The translations under genes and the position numbers were made by a program. 64,000 nt of DNA, taken from NCBI RefSeq assembly GCF_009834535.1, contig NC_045707.1:12586001-12650000 (forward strand), given 5' to 3'. Source of the DNA: Camelus ferus (taxonomy: Eukaryota). Of this stretch, positions 14,696 through 57,700 are shown piece after piece. The notes beneath the pieces were generated by a model. It did not search any database. It was given only the letters and a program-made list of their open reading frames with translations, and was not told the origin of the DNA. Each line of letters opens with the position of its first letter. Within the stretch, counting starts at the first letter, position 1.

Positions 14696-15496
14696 TCAGT
14701 GCAGGACGCTGCGGAAGGCAGCCATGTGGCGCCGCACGCTGTCTGCAATCTGCTCAGCTGACCTGGCCCTGCTGTAATAGTCTGTGAAGAGGCCGTCAGG
14801 GCTGAGCAAATAGATGGCGATGGAGTGGTCCACAATGTAATCCTGGTCCTCGTCCTTGGGGCCAGCGCTGTAGTACACGCGGTAGCTGCGGCTGACCTCG
14901 GCAATCTGCTCAGCTGAGCCAGTCAGGCCCAGCAGCCTTGGGTGGAAGTCCTGCACGTAGCGGGCCATGGCGGCCACGTCATCCCGCTCAGGGTCCACGG
15001 TGATAAAGAGGGGCTGCACGGGGGGCAGGCCAGGCTCTGTCTCCAGCTGCCTCACCACCCGCACCAGCTTCTCCAGCTCATCTGGGCAGATGTCGGGGCA
15101 GTGAGTGAAGCCAAAGTACATTAGCACCCACTGGCCCCGGAAGTCGGCTTTGCAGCGAGCCTGGCCCCAGTGGTCCAGCAGGCTGAAGTCACCCTGGCCC
15201 ACAGCAGCCTGACGCAGTGCCTCTGTCCGCTGTCGCTGCCGCCGCTGCTCCTTTTCTGCCCTTGCAGCCAGCCAGGCCCCACCTAGCCCAGCCCCAAACA
15301 AGGCTGTGATCAGCAGCCTAGTTCGTAGCCCAGGACCCTGGGGCCGGCCCTGCCTGCCAGCCTCCACAGGGCCCTGCCTTGACAGGAGCCGGCACCTCAC
15401 ATGTGGGGCCTTGCCTCCTGGGGTCCTGGGGAGGGCAGGAGGCTTGAGCTGAGAGAGCCCGTGCCAAGCCTTGGGTGCCCGAGCCAGCAGCAGCAT
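14696..15496 (-). CDS. SCO2: Cytochrome c oxidase assembly protein SCO2 (copper chaperone), single coding exon, 266 aa
   Basis: [11 protein letters not shown]... with a mitochondrial presequence, one TM helix, the [12 protein letters not shown] CxxxC motif and VDHSIAIY His ligand. Acceptor ttttccAG lies 13 nt before the ATG (exon starts at 15509). Confidence 0.98.
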
Positions 15497-16279
15497 GGAC
15501 CTGGTGCTCCTGGAAAAGAGCAAAGGTTTTGGAACCAGGAGGTGCCTCGGCCTCCTGGGTCATCCTCCATCATTCTGGGGAGACTCGCCACCATCTGAAG
15601 GACCAACCCCACACGGGCTCAGCTGGGCTCAGAAGTGCTTCACCTCTGAAACTTCGCACTCTGGCCTAGGTGTTATCAAATGTCCCTGCCTGTTCCTCTT
15701 GTCCTCCAGCCTGAGACCCTCATCCATCTCATCCCACCTGGCCCCTGCCCCCTGGTCCTGCTGCTGGCTGGCCTGCCCCTGCAGCTCTAACCAGCCTAGC
15801 CCAGCGCTGCCTGTGTCTGAGTGAGCTGACTGAAAGCATTCCAAGTGCATGCTTGCTGGGATTCCTGAGCATATTAATCTGTGTGCAATAAACTCCCATT
15901 TCTTGACAGGAAGTGGGTGAGTCTCTGGCTTCAATCCCCAAAGACTGACTCCGACCCTTCTGCAGCCTTTCTCTTGAGGACCGCTCCAACCATGGAGCTT
16001 TGGTTCCCTCCCTAGGCTCAGCCGAAACCCCCCGTCACCCGCACCCAGTCTGCAGTTACCTCCTGATGCCGCTCCGCCGCCGCCCCTTCCACCCTGAACC
16101 TTTCTGGGTGGTGGTCACCTGGAAGGGAAACAAGGTTTCCACTTGTCTGGAGCCTACCTTGTCCACAGCCGGGTATCCGACAGCAGCTCTGGGCTGGCGG
16201 CCCACGCTCTGCTGTTGCTTCGGTGACCTCCGACCCTTTCTCAGGGTCCTCTGGAGGTTTGCTAGGAGGAGGTCTTAGG

Positions 16280-16960
16280 ACTCCGCCTTACCTGCTCCGC
16301 TGCTGCTGGAAGGGCCTTCTCGAAGACTACTAAATGTCCGGCCTCTGCCCGGTCCAAAGGTTCCTGGGCTTGGGCTCTGGGCTGGATGACCTTGGACACG
16401 TCCCTTAGTGTCTACATCAGCTTCCTCCTTTGCAAAATGCGCTGTAAGCGGTGCATGAAATGGGCCTGCAAGCGAAGGCAGCCTGTGGACGTTTCCAGGG
16501 CCTGTCTCCTCCAGAAGGCCCCTCTTCTCAAGGAGCCCCCTCCAGAGCGCCCTCCAGGAACGCGCCGCGCGGGGTGGCCTTCCAGGTCCTCCGGACGCCG
16601 GCGTCGATGCCTCGTGCCTGTGGATGAGACCCAGGAAGCAGAGCTTGGCGCCCGCCCTGCTCGGTCACTGGGCGTATGCGTTAACGGCGTCGCGCTCGCG
16701 CAGACGAGCGTGGAGCCAGCGGGCGCCGGGCCGTGCGCATGCGCCAAAGGTGCAGGAACCCCCCTCGTCAGAAGTCACGTGCCGGAGGGCGGTGCGAGGA
16801 AGCCCCGCCCACCCTCGGCGGCCACGCCTCGCCCGGCGCGGTCTGCACTCGCCCCGGGTTTCCACCTTCTTGCTCCCGGCCCCCGTGGCGCCGGGCACCC
16901 GCACCAATGAGCGCCTCTCGGGGTTCGTTGCCGCGTGTCGGCCAGCTCGCGGGCGCGGGG
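16280..16960 (-). promoter_or_regulatory. SCO2 CpG-island promoter and candidate non-coding first exon
   Basis: CpG-dense. NRF1 consensus TGCGCATGCGC at 16734-16744, GTCACGTG E-box at 16774-16781, candidate donor CAG/GTAAGG with the exon ending at 16292. Confidence 0.7.
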
Positions 16961-19667
16961 GGCTGGGGGTGAAAAGCTGGGCTCAGGAAGGGAGGGGCAT
17001 GGGCTACTGGACGGACGGAGGTCTCTGGGCGTAGGGCTGAGCCAGAGCGGGTGCCCCTCTACCAGTCCCCTCACCGAGCCTGGTGACGGGTGACTGGGTC
17101 CGCAGGCCCGGGGGCCTCCGCACAGCAGCGCCTTCTCCACTCCAGGGAGTGGCCTACGCTGGGGTTGTCCTTGGCGGTCAGAGCAACCGCCCCGCGCCAA
17201 CCTGCGGAGACACGGCTCAGCGTGGACCCGCCCAGCATCTTGCGTGTCGTCAGACCCCAGTCCTTGATGCATCCTTGGTTGCCAGTTCCCGTGGAGTGAG
17301 GGGATCACAGAAGGCTTGGGAGGGGACGGGAGAGACCTGAAGCAGGCAGTGTGCTTGACTTAAGCGGTGGGGGTCAGGAAAGCCTTGTACCTGGCCCGGG
17401 CGGGAGGGTTTCCCCAGACCAGATCAGCCTTGCTCAGATAAAGCTGAAGAAGGAGGAATGCCAGCACGGAGTCCAGTCCCAGCAGAGGCAGGGTGAGACA
17501 GGGCTGCTGGGAGGACTAAAAGGTTCGTGGGGACCAGGCTGCCCAAGTTATGAAGGGGAGTTTGGGGCCACATGAGATCCACACCATCAGAGAGGACAGA
17601 ACCACACGGCGACCCCTACGGAGAGGCCACACTGGCTCCAGAAGGCACTGGTGCTTGCCTGCTCCCACGCCTGTGGCTGAATAGGGACGACTGCGGTTTC
17701 CCTGAACTTCCTGTCTACCACCAGAGCAGACAGGCTGTCTGTCGCCTTCTCACTGAGGATGGGGGCTGTGGGGGAGGCTACGGGTCTGGAGATGATGGAG
17801 ATCCTGGAGCTTCCCAGGAGATGTGGAGGATGCTGAATCTCCGGTCTGTCATGAGGGGTCAGGGATCCAGAGCATGGGGTAAAGTTCCCTATGTGATGGG
17901 ATGACAGGTTGTGCATCAGTCAGGTCACCCTCTTGAGTGGGTGATCAGGTATCCTGTGATGAGGATACACTGACCCTGGGTTTGGGTCAAATCACCGGTG
18001 ATTGTGTGTGTTCGCAGCTTGGGGTCTTTAACATGCAGGAGGTGGAGTCTGGGGTGAGGTCACCTGTGATGAGTGGCAGGCTGTCGACAGTGTCTGTTAC
18101 ATCTCTTGCTTCATACAGGATTCCATCTGCAAGAACCAGCTTCCTGCTCTGACCCACAATACAGCAGCTACTTGCCCCGGCAGCCCTTGCATCTGGCCAG
18201 CCCCCCCCCCCCCCCCGCATAAGGGCTCTTGGTGACCTTCAGTGGCCTCTGATCAGTAACCTCATCACTGACCCCGACTGAAAACTCATCAGCAACCTTG
18301 ACAAAATGTTCAAAATCATGACCAGTGACTTAGGAATGATTCTGATAAGTCCTCACTAATGACTCGTCCAGAATATTGATCAATGTCCTGTGGCTCATTA
18401 ATGATTAATCAGAGGCCTGTCAGTATTTTACAAAGTCCCTATTAATGACTTCAATCAAATTTCCATTGATGATCTTGATCAAAGTCCTAGGCGCCATGAA
18501 TAACTGGTCAATATCCTCACTAATGATCTTCTAGAGAGTCTGGCCAATGTATCCATCAATAACCCAGGTCAATGACCCATCAGTGGCCCACCTGTACCTG
18601 CTCTGGGCTCTAGGTGACACTAAATCCAGAAATATCCAAGGTGCTCCCCATGTGCCCCAGACCATGTCCACTGATCATTGGTACATGCTGGACAGGGATG
18701 CTGAGTACACCTGCATAGTCACCTCCTCACCCCCACATTTCTCCTCACCTTCCCTGGTTAGAACTTCAACTGGAGTTAAATATTTACTAAGCAGTGTAGT
18801 GGGTATTCAGCTGGAGAGGGAACTGAAAACAGATTGTCCTGGTTTGGGATGGGGGTGTCAGTGGGGGAGGAGGCAAGTACCTCTCGCTTGAGGCACAAGT
18901 CTGGGGGTGGAGGGGTAGCAGTACCGGCTCTTCCTTTGGGAGTCCTGCCTGCGGAATCTAGGAGGGAGAGCTGGAAGACTTGTTCCTGTTCTTGGGGGTT
19001 GATGGGAAGGGAGATTCAGGTTCTGTCCTGGGGTCCTGTTTGGGCCAGGCTTGAATTGGGCTGCTGACCTCTTTGAGGTCAGAGTTTCTGGTCTTGAGAG
19101 GAGGCATCTTTTAACCTTGCAGCCACAGGCAGGCAGGGCAGGTGCCAAGACTCTGCCTCAGGGCACGTTTGTCCCCGAGCTATAGGCACCAGGCCACTCC
19201 AGCTGCTGCCCAGACTTGCCCAGGACGGGTCAGCGCTGCAGTCTCCACCAGATCCATGCCTCGCAGGCGGTTGGCAAGATCATGGCCCCTAGGCGTGGGT
19301 ACAGTGGTGTAGGCAGCACAAGGAGGGAGGGCGTTCCCCCTGCAGTAGGTTATCCTGAGTGGCAGTGGCAGTGGTGGGGCGCTATGGCGTCGCCGGGGGC
19401 AGGCAGTCTCTGGGCCTGACCTTTGGGTCGGAGTCAGGGGCGGCCAGCCGTCGCCACGCATGGATTTGCGCGCCCTGTGCCTTCCAGGACGGCACTCACG
19501 AAACCCCTGACTTCAGTAGGCAGTTGCTTGGGCTCCGGCCCCTCCCTGGGAGAGTTCAGCAGATTCAACTGGGGCAGCTGGGGACAGGGGTCCGCAACTA
19601 CTCCGGGCTGCGACACACTTGGAACCTGTCGCCGCCCTGTGTCCGTGTCACTGCAGCCAGGCTCACC
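16880..19667 (-). pseudogene. TYMP: Thymidine phosphorylase unitary pseudogene in the syntenic TYMP position
   Basis: Exon remnants: ex2 19607-19462 (PEPKQLP..EVRGFVSAV), ex3 19288-19116 (NRLRGMDLVET..APALPACGCK), ex4 18684-18598 (VPMISGHGLGH..TLD..*SPEQ), ex5 18192-18064 ([28 protein letters not shown]), ex6 17765-17649 (ILSEK..LSALVVD..KF), ex7 17201-17075 (ctgaccgcc.aggacaac..ggccactccctggag), start of ex8 at about 17057-17030 (gctctggctcagc). Multiple inactivating lesions. Confidence 0.95.
18240..18590. repeat. Degenerate tandem-like repeat in TYMP intron 4
   Basis: Recurrent tgatcaa/gtcct/aatgac motifs. TCCTCACTAATGA occurs exactly at 18350-18362 and 18514-18526. Confidence 0.5.
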
Positions 19668-20100
19668 TGTCCCGACCCGGTTCCCGTTTTTCTCTCGTGT
19701 AGTCCCCTCAGTCCTGTGTCTGTGTCGCCCGTGTGCATGTCTCCATGTCTGGCTCCCACATCTCGGTCTCACAACTGACCCCGGTCCGTACCTGTCCTGC
19801 ACAGAGGCCCTAGCCCGTCTTCTTTCGAATCCTAGCGGGTTCCTCTCTGTCTTGCCGGAGGCCACAGCGTGGGAGCGGCGGGATGGCGCCTCCGGCCAGA
19901 TCCACGGAGGGGCGGGGCCTCGCGGACAGGCGGGGCTCTGGGCCAATCACCGCCTCGGAGGGGCGGGTATCCCGACCAATCACGAGGGCCCGCTTGCGGC
20001 CTCTCTTGCCCGCCCGCCGCGCCGCAAGCAGAGGGAAGGCGACACGCTGCTGGCTCCCGAATCTTTTAAGAAAAACATTTGTGGGGCCGCGCCCGCCCGG
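19667..20100 (-). promoter_or_regulatory. Retained TYMP-position promoter and non-coding exon 1
   Basis: CpG-rich. GC boxes at about 19909-19965, two CCAAT boxes (GGCCAATCA 19941-19949, GACCAATCA 19974-19982), canonical donor CAG/GTGAGC with the exon ending at 19667. Confidence 0.65.
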
Positions 20101-20104
20101 CCGA

Positions 20105-22211
<2,107 letters not shown>

Positions 22212-25776: not shown

Positions 25777-25903
25777 GGGGGAGGAGGTAGAGCTCAGTGG
25801 TAAAGCGCGTGCTTAGCATGCACGAAGTCCTGGGGTTCAATCCCCAGTACGTCCATTAAAAAAATAACCCAAATTACCTCCCTCCTTCACCCTGACAAAA
25901 AAA
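25777..25903 (+). mobile_element. tRNA-derived SINE (camelid Vic-1-like)
   Basis: ggggaggaggtagagctcagtggtaaagcgcgtgcttagcatgcacgaagtcctggggttcaatccccagtac, A-rich tail, TSD taaagtac(a/g)ga at 25764-25774 and 25904-25914. Confidence 0.9.
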
Positions 25904-30820: not shown

Positions 30821-30948
30821 GGGGAGGGTATAGCTCAAATGGTACAGTGTGTGCTTAGCATGCAAGAGGTCCTGGGTTCAATGCCCAGTACCGCCTCTAA
30901 AAATAAATAAGCAAATAAACCTCCCCCTCCTAAACAGAAAAAGAAAAA
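30821..30948 (+). mobile_element. tRNA-derived SINE (camelid Vic-1-like)
   Basis: ggggagggtatagctcaaatggtacagtgtgtgcttagcatgcaagaggtcctgggttcaatgcccagtac, A-rich tail, imperfect TSD ending tcatgct. Confidence 0.9.
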
Positions 30949-32957: not shown

Positions 32958-33113
32958 NNNNNNNNNNNNNNNNNNNNNNNNNNNNNNNNNNNNNNNNNNN
33001 NNNNNNNNNNNNNNNNNNNNNNNNNNNNNNNNNNNNNNNNNNNNNNNNNNNNNNNNNNNNNNNNNNNNNNNNNNNNNNNNNNNNNNNNNNNNNNNNNNNN
33101 NNNNNNNNNNNNN
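32958..33113. other. Assembly gap (156 N)
   Basis: Run of N. Confidence 1.
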
Positions 33114-51700: not shown

Positions 51701-54700
51701 AGGTAACCTCCTTGGTTAAGTTTATTTCTAGGTATATTATTGTCTTTGATGTAATGGAAATGTTTATGCCAGTTATAAAATTCTGGTTTTTGAAGTGGGA
51801 AAAAAAAGTGAATGAACGGCTGCAAATGGCAAAATATCCTTCTTTCTTATGGGTGAGTTGCATTCCATTACATATATATGCTGCATCTTCTTTATCCATT
51901 CATCTATTGATGTGCACTGATGATGCTTCCATATCTTGGTAATTATAACAACTGTTGTTGTTAATAGCAGGGTGTATGTATCTTTTTGAATTATTATTTT
52001 GTGGTTGGCTTTATTCCTTTGATAACGATGTAAGTTTAAAAAGCTAAAGCTCTAAATGTTCTTAGAAACAATGAACAGTACATATATGTCAATTTTAAAA
52101 AATATGTGCAGTATATTGTGTATATGTATTTACATGTGATATATATTTATATGTGCAAATTGTAACAATTCTACCTAATAAAACTGAAAAATGAAAAAAA
52201 AGAAAATAATTATACACCTAACCAAGTTACCACCCAGTTATAAACATAGACATATTCTTAAGCATTTATGAATTCAAGAAACACAATGTCTATAGCTATA
52301 GTTACTAGGGTAAATGTTTGAATTATTTGAATACAGAACGTGAATCTCAACAACCATAGGAATTATGACTACAGAATAGAATGTAAATATTGTAAATGCT
52401 GTGAATGTAAACATTACTTGTACTTGACAATATACAAATAATAATATAATGAATGATGGTTGTGTCTTAGTCTCTTCATTTTTAAAATAGGGATAATAAG
52501 AGTTCCTATAATCTCATAAAATTTTTGTGAGGATTAAATAAACTAATTCACATAGTGCTCAGAATAGCACCTAACTAGAATAGAATAGTAATCTAGCAAT
52601 TACTAAGTACCGAATGAACATTACTGATTAGTATTATTAGGTCCTGAATAAAGATAAAAAAGATATAACTGAAGAAATAACACTAGATTCCTTATTGTTT
52701 TCCCACAAACTTCCTTAATTTTGGAACAATCTTATAGGAGCTAGTGTATTTTTTATCTTGAAGAAATATTTATTTTAAGTGAAGAATTTCTTCATTTCAA
52801 TTCAATTTAAATTCTTAAGTAAAATTAATGGTAGTACTCTTTATTTTAAAAGTAATTTGTATGATAGCCAATAGGCTCATGAAAAATGCTTAATATCACT
52901 AATTATCAGAGAAATGCAAATCAAAACTACAATGAGGTATCACCTCACAATAGTCGGAATGGCCAGCATTCTGAAGTNNNNNNNNNNNNNNNNNNNNNNN
53001 NNNNNNNNNNNNNNNNNNNNNNNNNNNNNNNNNNNNNNNNNNNNNNNNNNNNNNNNNNNNNNNNNNNNNNNNNNNNNNNNNNNNNNNNNNNNNNNNNNNN
53101 NNNNNNNNNNNNNNNNNNNNNNNNNNNNNNNNNNNNNNNNNNNNNNNNNNNNNNNTAATTCAGTAAGATACATGCATCCCCATGTTCATAGCAGCACTAT
53201 ATACAAGCCAAGACATGGAAGCAAACTGAATGTCCAGTGACAGATGACTCAGATGACTGGATAAAGAAGCTGTGGTACATTTATAAAATGGACTACTACT
53301 CAGCCAAAAAAAAAGAATAAAATAATGCCATTTGTAGCAACATGGATGGACCCGGAGATTGTCATACTAAGTGAAGTAAGCCAGAAGGAGAAATAAAAAT
53401 ACCATATGATATCACTTACATGTGGAATCTCAAAAAAAAAAAAAAAAGACAAATGAACTTATTTACAAAACAGAAACAGACTTACAGATAGAAAACAAAC
53501 TTAGGGTTATCAGGGAGGAAGGGGGTGGGAAGGGATAGACTGGGAGTTCGAGATGTGCAGACAGTAACATATATAAAATAGATAAACAACAAGTTTATAC
53601 TGTATAGCACAGGGAACTATATTCAATATCTTATAGTAACTTACAGTGAAAAAGAATATGAAAATGAATATATCAATGTTCATGTATGACTGAACATTAT
53701 GTTATACACCAGGAATTGACACAATATTGACGCAAACTGACTATACTTCAATAAAATATATATATAAAAAATAAATTAAAAAGTAACCTGTATGATTCAA
53801 TTTTAATTAAACTGTATCTTTCAAAAAAAATTATCCCTCCATGTATCCATGCACAGGTCCATCATTCTATTTCTGCAGAGAGAGACTTGGAAGAGTGTTC
53901 ACCAATGTTAACGGCTAACTCTGAGTGACTGGATTGTGCTGATTTGAAACTTTCTTTGTAACTTTCTATTTTAATTTTACTTTGATTGGATTTTAAGAAC
54001 AATGTACAAGTAACACTTCTTTAAAAATCATTATTTAATAATTATCAATTAAACAATTACATAATGATGTTTATTAAATATAAACAAGATAATTATTCAT
54101 TATAATAATTTAATAGTTACTCTTTATTTTAAAATGCTAATAATCACACCTGGAAAATTCTGCTGTATACAATAATAATCTAATAAATTAATAAATATTG
54201 ATAAAAATGGATGATTTGGGAGGAAAATGAAATATCCACATTGACATAATCTTAAAGCAATAACCAAAGATGAAATTGAAAAAGTTATCAGGAGTTATTC
54301 CCAGTAGTCTTACCATTAAATGTTCAATAAAGAATTGTCTCCAAATACTGCACATATAATTTCAGAATGTAGAAAAAGAAGACTCTAGAGGTTGAGTAGA
54401 CCTGGACAGTTTAAACTCTCTAAGCTCTAATTTTCTCATCTATAAAGTGGAAATAACAGTGTCTTTCACTCATAAATCTATTACGAAGATTAAATGAGAT
54501 AATGTGTGTAAAGCACACGGTAAAAAGACCAACACCTGGGAGCTGACACACAAGCTGTTAGGGACAATATCAGAGTGACACTCAATGCCCGGACAGCTGC
54601 AGCCTTCCTATACCCTGGCATTAATTATTCAATAAATAAAACAGAAAACCTCCCATTTATAATGAGAACAGAAACACAGAAGTTAATGTATTAAAGAAAT

Positions 54701-57700
54701 CTGGAGAGGCTCCCTTTGGTAGCACATATACTAAAATTGGAATGATACAGAAAAGATCAGCAAGGGCCCTGGGCAAGGATGACATGCAAACTTGTGAAGT
54801 GTTTCACATTTATGTAGTGAACAGTATGACGACTATAGTTAGGAAGACTGCGTTACATATTTGAAAGCTACTAAGGGAGTAATCTTAAAAGTTCTCATCA
54901 CAAGGGAAAAATAACTTGTAGCCAGGTGAGGTGATGGATATTAACTAAACTTCTTATGATATCATTTCACAATATATACATATATCAAATCATTATGTTA
55001 CACAACCTAAACTTATACAATATTCTATGTCAATTATATTTCAGTAAAATTGGAAAAAATAAAACTGAAGGCAAAAAAAATCTGGAGAAAAATATTGCAA
55101 AACCCTTTGAGACATGTTAAAGAACATCTGAATAACTGGATTCACAGACATGGAAAACAAACTTATGGTTACCAGAGAGGGAACGGGGTGGGGAGAGATA
55201 AATTGGGTGTTTGGGATTTGCAGATAAAACTTCTATATATAAAATAGATAAACAGCAAGGTCGTACTGTATAGCACAGGGAACTATATTCAATATCATGT
55301 ATTAGCCTATAATGAAAAAGAGTATGAACAGGAATATATAAATATTATGTACAATTGAATCACTGTGCTATATACACCAGAAATTCACACAATGTTGTAA
55401 ATCGACTATACTTCAATTAAAAACAAAGAACATCTGAATAATTGGAGAGAAATACCATATTCCTGCATGAGAGTACTTAAAAAGATATTATTCTTTCCAT
55501 ATAAATGTATAGGTTTAACACAATTCCAAACAAAATATTAAATGAATCTATTATTTATCTGGGAGAATAAACATGTGAGAAAAGCTAAAAAGAGAAAAAA
55601 GAAAGAAAAAGGAATAATGAAGGGGGACTTACTGATTGATAATGAACTAATGTTGATATGCCATAAAACCTCACATATTATGAAATAGGTTAGCTATCTC
55701 TGCTCTACTATATGCACAAAGTTCACGAGTAGTTTAGAAATCACTTCCAAACTAATAGGATAAGATGGGATAGATTTTGGGGGGAAAAAGTTGGAATCTC
55801 TCCTTGTCCTGAGGAATTTTACATTCTCAAGGCTCATTCCCACACAAGGCATACTACAGCTAAACTTGTACTAGGAAAATCATCCTAGGTCATGTTTTGA
55901 CTTAAGTTCAAGAGCATGGAAAGAGAAACTTGAGGCCTTGGAGTCAAGAGGATTTTACCTTTTTATAATCGCTTAAAATAGGCATATATTTATGTATATA
56001 TAAATATGCACACTTATTTGCTGGTTGATGATTATAATAGTTGATGACTGCTTCTTTGGTGATTTTCCCTGCCCTGTGTGGTCACTGGAAAAATTGGCAA
56101 AAGCCTTCCCAGGGGCAACAGAGAGCAAGGACTCACATGTTGGGCCTCACTTTAAATTCAGTCTGAAGGGTCAGGGTGTGAGATTCATGTTACTTCTGTC
56201 AACAATATTTGTCCTAACTTGTTCTAGGACTGTGAAGAAATAAATAGTTCTGCTGCTTACACATCAGGTAGAAAAATATTTTACTGTTTCCAACCATTAG
56301 ATCTGAGTCCATGAGCCTAAAAACATATAATTTGCTTAAGAAATTACAAAAGCTAAATTTTACAAATTATTTTAATACTATTTAATCTGTAGATGCTTAT
56401 ATGTTCAATAAAACATTTACCAGCTGATAAACTGCTAAAGAAAAATTTTTAAAAATTTATATTACCCCCCAAATTAGGCAACTGTGCAGAACATTTATAT
56501 AAAAATATAATTATAAAAAAGAGGAAAATATGTACAACTAAAACTAAGAAAAAAATAAGCTAAAGGGAAAGTAATGGACCTTACGCCAAATCAAGGAATG
56601 TGACATGGAAGAGCCTGGGGAGGGGATGTGGAATCATGCACGACAGAAGCCTCATTCATGCCAAGGAGATGTAGGCTGTTTGTTTTATTTGTTTTATTTT
56701 GTGGGAAAGAAAGTGCACAAGCCTAACATGTGTAGCTGCTTAAATACAATAGTTGCATGTATTAGACAACTTCAAGTTTACTGAGAAAACTTTAAAAGAC
56801 AAATTTTAAAAATTGTCAAAGCTGAGTCTTTTATGACTTGTTTCAATAAAAACACCTGTCAACCTTGCCTCTAATGTGAGAGAGCAGAGAGAGCATTTTA
56901 AAAATAACAATATTACCTTAGTAATATCATCTTAGCAATATTAACTTCATTATGATTACTTAATAACTTACTTAACTATTACCTGAATTATTGTTGGGAT
57001 ATTTGCCAAAAAGAAAACCTCTAGTGGATCTAAATAAAAATGTAGTACGCAGCCTGGTTCCTTTGGCACACCAGATAGTTTAGAATTAAATGATTAAAAG
57101 AAAACACAGGTAGAAGTAAATATTTCACTGATCTTGGATTATGGAAAGATTTTCTAGGCATCACAGCAATGGTAATAAATCAGAAAGGAAAATATTGATA
57201 CATTTTTACTACATAAGACTTCTGTTTACCAAAGCTTCATGTACAACATCAAAAGGAAAATTATAAACTGGGAAAAACATTTACTACAATTTTAAGCAAG
57301 GACCTTATGGTCTTACAAATCAATAAGAGATTCTATCACAGAAACCTGCTATTCCTTTCTTGTTTTCAGTGCCATGCCCAAGTTAAGGCTAGCCCCTTTT
57401 CAGCCTTTAGTTCTGCAAAAACTTTCTAATATGTCTTCCTGCCTCTAGCCTTCCCTCTCCAACCATCTCTCACACTGTTACCAGAGGTATCTTTCTTAAA
57501 TACAAGCATCTTCCTTGAAATCCCAAATGGCTCCCTTTCACCTAGACAAGAAAGGTAAATCTCCTTAGCTTGGCACTGAAGACCATTCCTCTCACCTCTT
57601 CAGCCTCTTCTTTCTTTGGCCTGCCACCTTGTGACTCTCATGCGCTAATGTGGCTTCTTGACTGTGCCAGTCTCTCCACAGGCACACAGCCTTGGCTATC

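Follow-up and report, generated by a model that had tools for sequence, protein, structure and literature searches.

A decayed unitary TYMP pseudogene between ODF3B and SCO2 in Camelus ferus, with lesions shared with cetaceans

Introduction

TYMP is the gene for thymidine phosphorylase, and its loss causes MNGIE, a human mitochondrial disease. In humans, TYMP is intact and biallelic loss leads to disease, whereas the camel locus described here lacks an ORF, the phosphate loop, and the C-terminal domain. The remnants of camel exons 4 to 6 align, in order, to residues 139–269 of the human enzyme (PDB 1UOU, 2J0F, and 2WK5/2WK6).

Common loss of TYMP in Cetartiodactyla has been described by Sharma and Hiller (2019, NAR Genomics and Bioinformatics; PMC7671337). 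The passages of that paper that deal with TYMP attribute the finding of the loss in cow to the report on the cattle genome (Elsik et al., 2009), term the species with the loss "natural knockouts," and explain their tolerance by a broader substrate range of uridine phosphorylase (UPP1), for which mouse data are cited. In the same passages alpaca belongs to the Cetartiodactyla set, and camelids are covered for TYMP by implication only. As far as the relevant part of a second source goes (PMC8021847, citing Ferone, 1975), thymidine phosphorylase is absent from the blood of sheep and present in that of horse and human. The closest experimental system is the Tymp/Upp1 double-knockout mouse (Lopez et al., 2009, as cited in PMC7671337), which shows that, where thymidine is a substrate of UPP1 as well, an organism can make up for losing only TYMP. 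In the mouse the loss was engineered and the specificity of UPP1 was measured, whereas the loss in camel is natural and is known here from the sequence.

The camel locus agrees with the system of Sharma and Hiller (2019), as presented in these passages, in the gene, the syntenic locus, and the kinds of lesions (frameshifts, stops, splice-site mutations, and exon deletions). In both cases the conclusion is that the whole clade inherited an ancestral loss, with compensation by UPP1 as the hypothesis; nothing essential differs. Beyond that work, we provide a per-lesion list for a camelid, a division of the lesions into shared and camel-specific ones, a comparison of the rates of exon and intron divergence, and a residual splice junction.

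Materials and methods

The window, that is, the whole stretch of DNA that was analyzed, comprises 64 kb of the genome of Camelus ferus, and all coordinates refer to it. The reference for lesion calling was an intact mammalian TYMP protein (P0024; 487 aa, with the three Pfam domains of thymidine phosphorylase), the CDS of which was taken from an mRNA contig (L003); lesions were called by nucleotide-level alignment of the camel locus to this CDS. A library of 1.84 billion representative proteins was queried with the exon 5 piece, which yielded intact TYMP as well as ORFs predicted on the remnants of other species. The cetacean loci were a scaffold of Lipotes vexillifer (baiji; L001, with P0009) and a fin whale scaffold (L002, with P0004).

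Results

The locus and its neighbors

Two neighboring genes frame the region of interest:

14699–15523, minus strand: SCO2 coding exon, intact, downstream neighbor (Pfam SCO1-SenC, E 3e-47)
20309–20851, minus strand: ODF3B (CIMAP1B) exon with SHIPPO repeats, upstream neighbor (Pfam SHIPPO-rpt, E 2e-13)

The window also contains the last exon of NCAPH2 (Pfam CNDH2_C), on the strand opposite to SCO2. Three-frame translation of the interval between SCO2 and ODF3B, the latter extending from about 20300 to 21800, revealed pieces resembling thymidine phosphorylase. Matches in the PDB were obtained for three of them: the exon 5 piece corresponds to residues 180–218 of the human enzyme (E 2e-12), the exon 6 piece to residues 214–269 (E 5e-5), and the exon 4 piece to residues 139–156 (E 6e-3). 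Together with the matches to the intact CDS, these hits establish homology to thymidine phosphorylase (TYMP; Pfam PF02885, PF00591, and PF07831) over its helical and alpha/beta domains. Pfam searches with the stop-free pieces returned nothing relevant, because these models do not recognize single pieces of such short length and advanced decay. Similarly, a phmmer search of the PDB with the exon 2 piece did not find thymidine phosphorylase, and this exon came to light only when the locus was aligned with intact TYMP at the nucleotide level and by tblastn.

Alignment to the intact CDS bore out the arrangement that a sequence-only reading of the window had proposed: exons 2 to 7, probably followed by some 43 nt of exon 8, lie in their original order on the minus strand, between ODF3B and SCO2. 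The remnants are as follows:

19462–19614, minus strand: TYMP exon 2 remnant (tblastn E 1.6e-4 and alignment to the intact CDS)
19460–19461, minus strand: exon 2 splice donor, GT changed to AT, specific to the camel lineage (GT kept in both cetaceans at the aligned position)
19116–19288, minus strand: TYMP exon 3 remnant, 173 nt compared with 203 nt in the intact exon (tblastn E 4e-10 and CDS alignment)
18598–18686, minus strand: TYMP exon 4 remnant (exon 18684–18598; with the acceptor to 18686; PDB match and CDS alignment)
18064–18192, minus strand: TYMP exon 5 remnant, 129 nt compared with 130 nt (91% identical to the intact CDS)
17648–17765, minus strand: TYMP exon 6 remnant, 3' end 1–2 nt short, frame shifted (PDB match and CDS alignment)
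17075–17201, minus strand: TYMP exon 7 remnant, 127 nt compared with 163 nt (CDS alignment)
17012–17055, minus strand: probable start of TYMP exon 8, CDS 937–979 (score reached by 7 of 1000 shuffles)

The gene order NCAPH2-SCO2-TYMP remnant-ODF3B corresponds to the conserved position of TYMP. Given this syntenic position and the retained introns, the remnant is not a processed copy.

Elsewhere in the window, two tRNA-like elements (25783–25855 and 30824–30896) are SINEs derived from tRNA-Ala, which we take to be the camelid type of SINE. Consensus fragments of pig, ruminant, carnivore, horse, primate, and rodent SINEs had no matches in the window. Scans of the TYMP region for tandem repeats and for bacterial promoters and terminators were empty and have no bearing on the locus.

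Lesions in the remnant exons

Each of the lesions listed in the sequence-only reading was found in the nucleotide alignment to the intact CDS at the position claimed for it, and several further ones were added. In exon 2, GTC (19614–19612) stands in place of the start codon, and an in-frame deletion of 42 nt (11 + 31) takes out ELIRLKRDGGRLSEGD. Newly recognized in this exon were a frameshifting deletion of 22/23 nt and a deletion of 5 nt. Exon 3 carries deletions of 1, 2, 7, and 20 nt, among which the 7 nt deletion had not been listed before; the 20 nt deletion removes the phosphate-binding loop (K-H-S-T-G-G-V-G-D-K, including STGGVGDK). In exon 4, a 12 nt deletion is accompanied by an in-frame TAG (18612–18610), and the acceptor is changed from AG to AT (18686–18685), a lesion likewise added here. 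Exon 5 has lost a single nucleotide near 18170. In exon 7, an initial deletion of 22 nt brings a TGA into frame (17180–17178), and further indels of −9, −1, −10, and +6 nt complement the earlier list. The donor of this exon (GT, 17074–17073) is intact.

The 3' part of the gene is largely gone. That an exon 8 start follows exon 7, as the sequence-only reading had it, can be upheld with modest support from the alignment of CDS 937–979 to 17055–17012, its weak side being the seven shuffles in 1000 that equal the score. With this probable assignment, intron 7 would have shrunk to about 19 nt. Neither tblastn nor shuffle tests located the rest of exon 8 or exons 9 and 10 (CDS 980–1464) at a significant level in the interval from exon 7 to SCO2, and the C-terminal PYNP_C domain, encoded by exons 9 and 10, is thus missing. 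Two candidates for this part of the gene were rejected. A match noticed by eye, of 16617–16300 to exons 8 to 10 ("ARGIDAGV" versus "AQGVDPGL"), was unsupported by tblastn and by shuffle tests, and a weak blastn match of CDS 1220–1267 to 16855–16806 was no better than shuffled sequences (20 of 200).

Altogether, the remnant contains at least 10 frameshifting indels and in-frame stops, plus two mutated splice sites. An uninterrupted ORF does not exist, as there is no ATG, the frame is closed by a TAG (exon 4) and a TGA (exon 7), and the exon 2 donor and exon 4 acceptor are non-canonical. With the start codon, the phosphate-binding loop, and the C-terminal third (most of exon 8 to exon 10) gone, a frame broken by frameshifts and stops, and mutations at two splice sites, no enzyme can be encoded.

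Comparison with cetaceans and the age of the loss

Mapping of the lesions in two relatives, baiji and fin whale, revealed that several of them are shared. The loci of both cetaceans have the same gene order of ODF3B, remnant, SCO2, and NCAPH2. Common to camel, baiji, and fin whale are the loss of the start codon, the 22 nt deletion in exon 2, the 20 nt deletion in exon 3, which removes the phosphate loop at the same position in all three species, and the AG to AT change of the exon 4 acceptor. The exon 7 indels of −22, −9, −1, and +6 nt are common to camel and baiji, the fin whale scaffold having an assembly gap there; the GT donor of exon 7 is kept in camel and baiji. The locus is colinear between camel and baiji throughout, with 78–81% identity, including the interval from exon 7 to SCO2 that lacks exons 8 to 10.

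The identity between camel and baiji was 83.8% for the exon remnants (n = 752) versus 83.9% for the introns (n = 1668; Fisher p = 0.95), so that no purifying selection on the former TYMP exons is discernible in this comparison. Since the exons are no more similar than the introns, they have been unconstrained in either lineage since the split of camel and baiji. The shared lesions and the decay of the exons at the rate of introns indicate that TYMP was already dead before the camelid-cetacean split, that is, in the ancestor shared by Tylopoda and Cetacea, in stem Cetartiodactyla. This agrees with the claim of an old loss in the sequence-only reading. The camel lineage then added deletions of 42, 12, and 10 nt, those of 1, 2, and 7 nt in exon 3, and that of 1 nt in exon 5, together with the in-frame TAG of exon 4 and the GT to AT change of the exon 2 donor.

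Alternative explanations

The lesions might be errors of assembly or sequencing in a GC-rich region, with the gene being intact in reality. The region is indeed GC-rich (57–64%), and an intronic poly-G run (18201–18214) differs in length by 2 nt between sequencing runs, a change that touches no lesion. The stretch is contained in 20 public runs from nine studies (share of sampled words 0.47–1.00), 14 of which, all labeled as DNA or unlabeled and carrying two organism labels, hold 97–100% of the sampled 31-mers. In contigs of two independent DNA runs the stretch recurs over 16700–19900, with no difference at any lesion, and one contig of 18 kb covers the whole of it. This read evidence consists of assembled contigs, from which rare alleles drop out and in which they may be hidden. 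Between runs, SNPs were found at 16758, 16765, 16855, 17728, 18727, and 18810, and one RNA run has a 1 nt insertion at 16758. More than 20 separate lesions recur in contigs of independent runs and studies, many lesions occupy identical positions in the assemblies of baiji and fin whale, and the sole length variation that could be adduced is intronic. The explanation by errors is thereby effectively refuted, in line with the claim made from the sequence alone. It is also highly improbable, if not quite to the same degree, that the enzyme is made, in place of the dead locus, from a functional duplicate or retrocopy of TYMP at another site of the genome: the passages on TYMP in PMC7671337 state that the species with the loss were checked and had no functional duplicate, and the activity is missing from the blood of sheep, according to the part of PMC8021847 cited above.

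A different possibility concerns the use of the remnant rather than its decay, namely that SCO2 transcripts receive alternative 5' leaders from the TYMP promoter and the exon 7 donor and that part of the remnant has been kept for the regulation of SCO2. It derives from one RNA contig of run X19 (442 nt, mean depth 146.6), in which the following intron is removed:

16618–17074, minus strand: GT-AG intron of 457 nt, removed in one RNA contig (run X19)

This contig ends in 30 nt of exon 7 (17103–17074), and its next 30 letters match 16616–16587 exactly. The borders of the spliced intron are canonical (GT at 17074–17073, AG at 16619–16618), and the donor of the dead exon 7, which is intact in camel and baiji, is joined from 17075 to an exon that starts at 16617 and precedes the coding exon of SCO2. 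This exon at 16617 lies downstream of a CpG island that holds the palindrome GCGCATGCGC (16735–16744). The junction suggests that some transcripts enter SCO2 by read-through or as alternative leaders. However, no more than one contig shows it, and the exon 7 side of this contig measures just 30 nt. The remaining RNA contigs that cover the pseudogene follow the genome colinearly and may represent DNA or unspliced RNA, transcription and DNA carry-over being indistinguishable in them. Moreover, the exon remnants evolve exactly like introns, with no sign of constraint. A retained role in SCO2 expression is therefore unlikely, though clearly less so than the two explanations above; if true, the pseudogene would be a regulatory appendage of the neighboring gene for a mitochondrial copper chaperone.

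Discussion

The conserved ODF3B-TYMP-SCO2-NCAPH2 position and the many independent disabling lesions, which are confirmed in independent runs and shared with sister lineages, support the view that the stretch is a unitary TYMP pseudogene at the normal chromosomal position of the gene, the absence of a second copy being taken from the TYMP passages of PMC7671337. We assign a probability of about 95% to the explanation as a whole, that is, to a locus that cannot encode the enzyme and to which the camel lineage later added lesions of its own.

The loss of TYMP and the explanation proposed for it are already published, in 2019 and, for cow, in 2009. The interpretation of the locus as a natural knockout, put forward in the sequence-only reading, is thus supported by the disabled syntenic locus, but the loss had already been catalogued in the TYMP passages of PMC7671337. 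As both the loss and the mechanism have been in the literature since 2019, the camel window adds confirmation and detail at the level of single lesions, not a discovery. In keeping with established knowledge and with the published hypothesis, thymidine and deoxyuridine would be cleared by UPP1 in these animals. The sequence-only reading had suggested that UPP1 or UPP2 may compensate or that the animal may tolerate thymidine; the genes for both phosphorylases lie outside the window.

The gene underlying MNGIE has been knocked out naturally in camelids, as it has in ruminants, pigs, and whales. In all these animals its loss bears on thymidine homeostasis, on the maintenance of mtDNA, and on the pharmacology of fluoropyrimidines or trifluridine.

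Decay and possible transcription between ODF3B and SCO2

In a single RNA contig (sequencing run X19; 442 nt, with 30 nt on the TYMP exon-7 side of the junction), the span 16618-17074 on the minus strand had been removed by splicing. The donor in this contig is that of the dead TYMP exon 7 (17075|GT), the acceptor lies at 16619-16618, and the exon joined to this donor is located upstream of the SCO2 coding exon. The junction may represent read-through from the TYMP remnant into SCO2 or, alternatively, an alternative SCO2 leader.

The former place of TYMP exons 9-10 is occupied by a CpG island upstream of SCO2 that contains the palindrome GCGCATGCGC (16735-16744). The palindrome resembles an NRF-1 site, and on the strength of this likeness the site is probably part of the SCO2 promoter.

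Within the remnant, exon 5 (18064-18192) is 91% identical to the intact orthologue, the mammalian TYMP coding sequence used as reference, compared with 72-84% for the other exons. This excess is probably due to chance because, between camel and baiji (Lipotes vexillifer), exon 5 shows 88% identity, which falls inside the intron range. In the former intron 4, a poly-G run (18201-18214) differs by 2 nt between independent DNA sequencing runs; the run may be polymorphic in length, or the difference may be a homopolymer error.

Other features of the window

25783-25855, plus strand: tRNA-Ala-derived SINE, copy 1
30824-30896, plus strand: tRNA-Ala-derived SINE, copy 2
32958-33113: run of N, 156 nt, within AT-rich repeat DNA
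52978-53155: run of N, 178 nt, within AT-rich repeat DNA
54709-54813, plus strand: full-length U6 snRNA match, 84.5 bits

Both SINEs are of the camelid type and thereby hint at the clade of the host. The U6 match is surrounded by AT-rich, LINE-like DNA and probably represents a dispersed copy of U6 or a U6 pseudogene.
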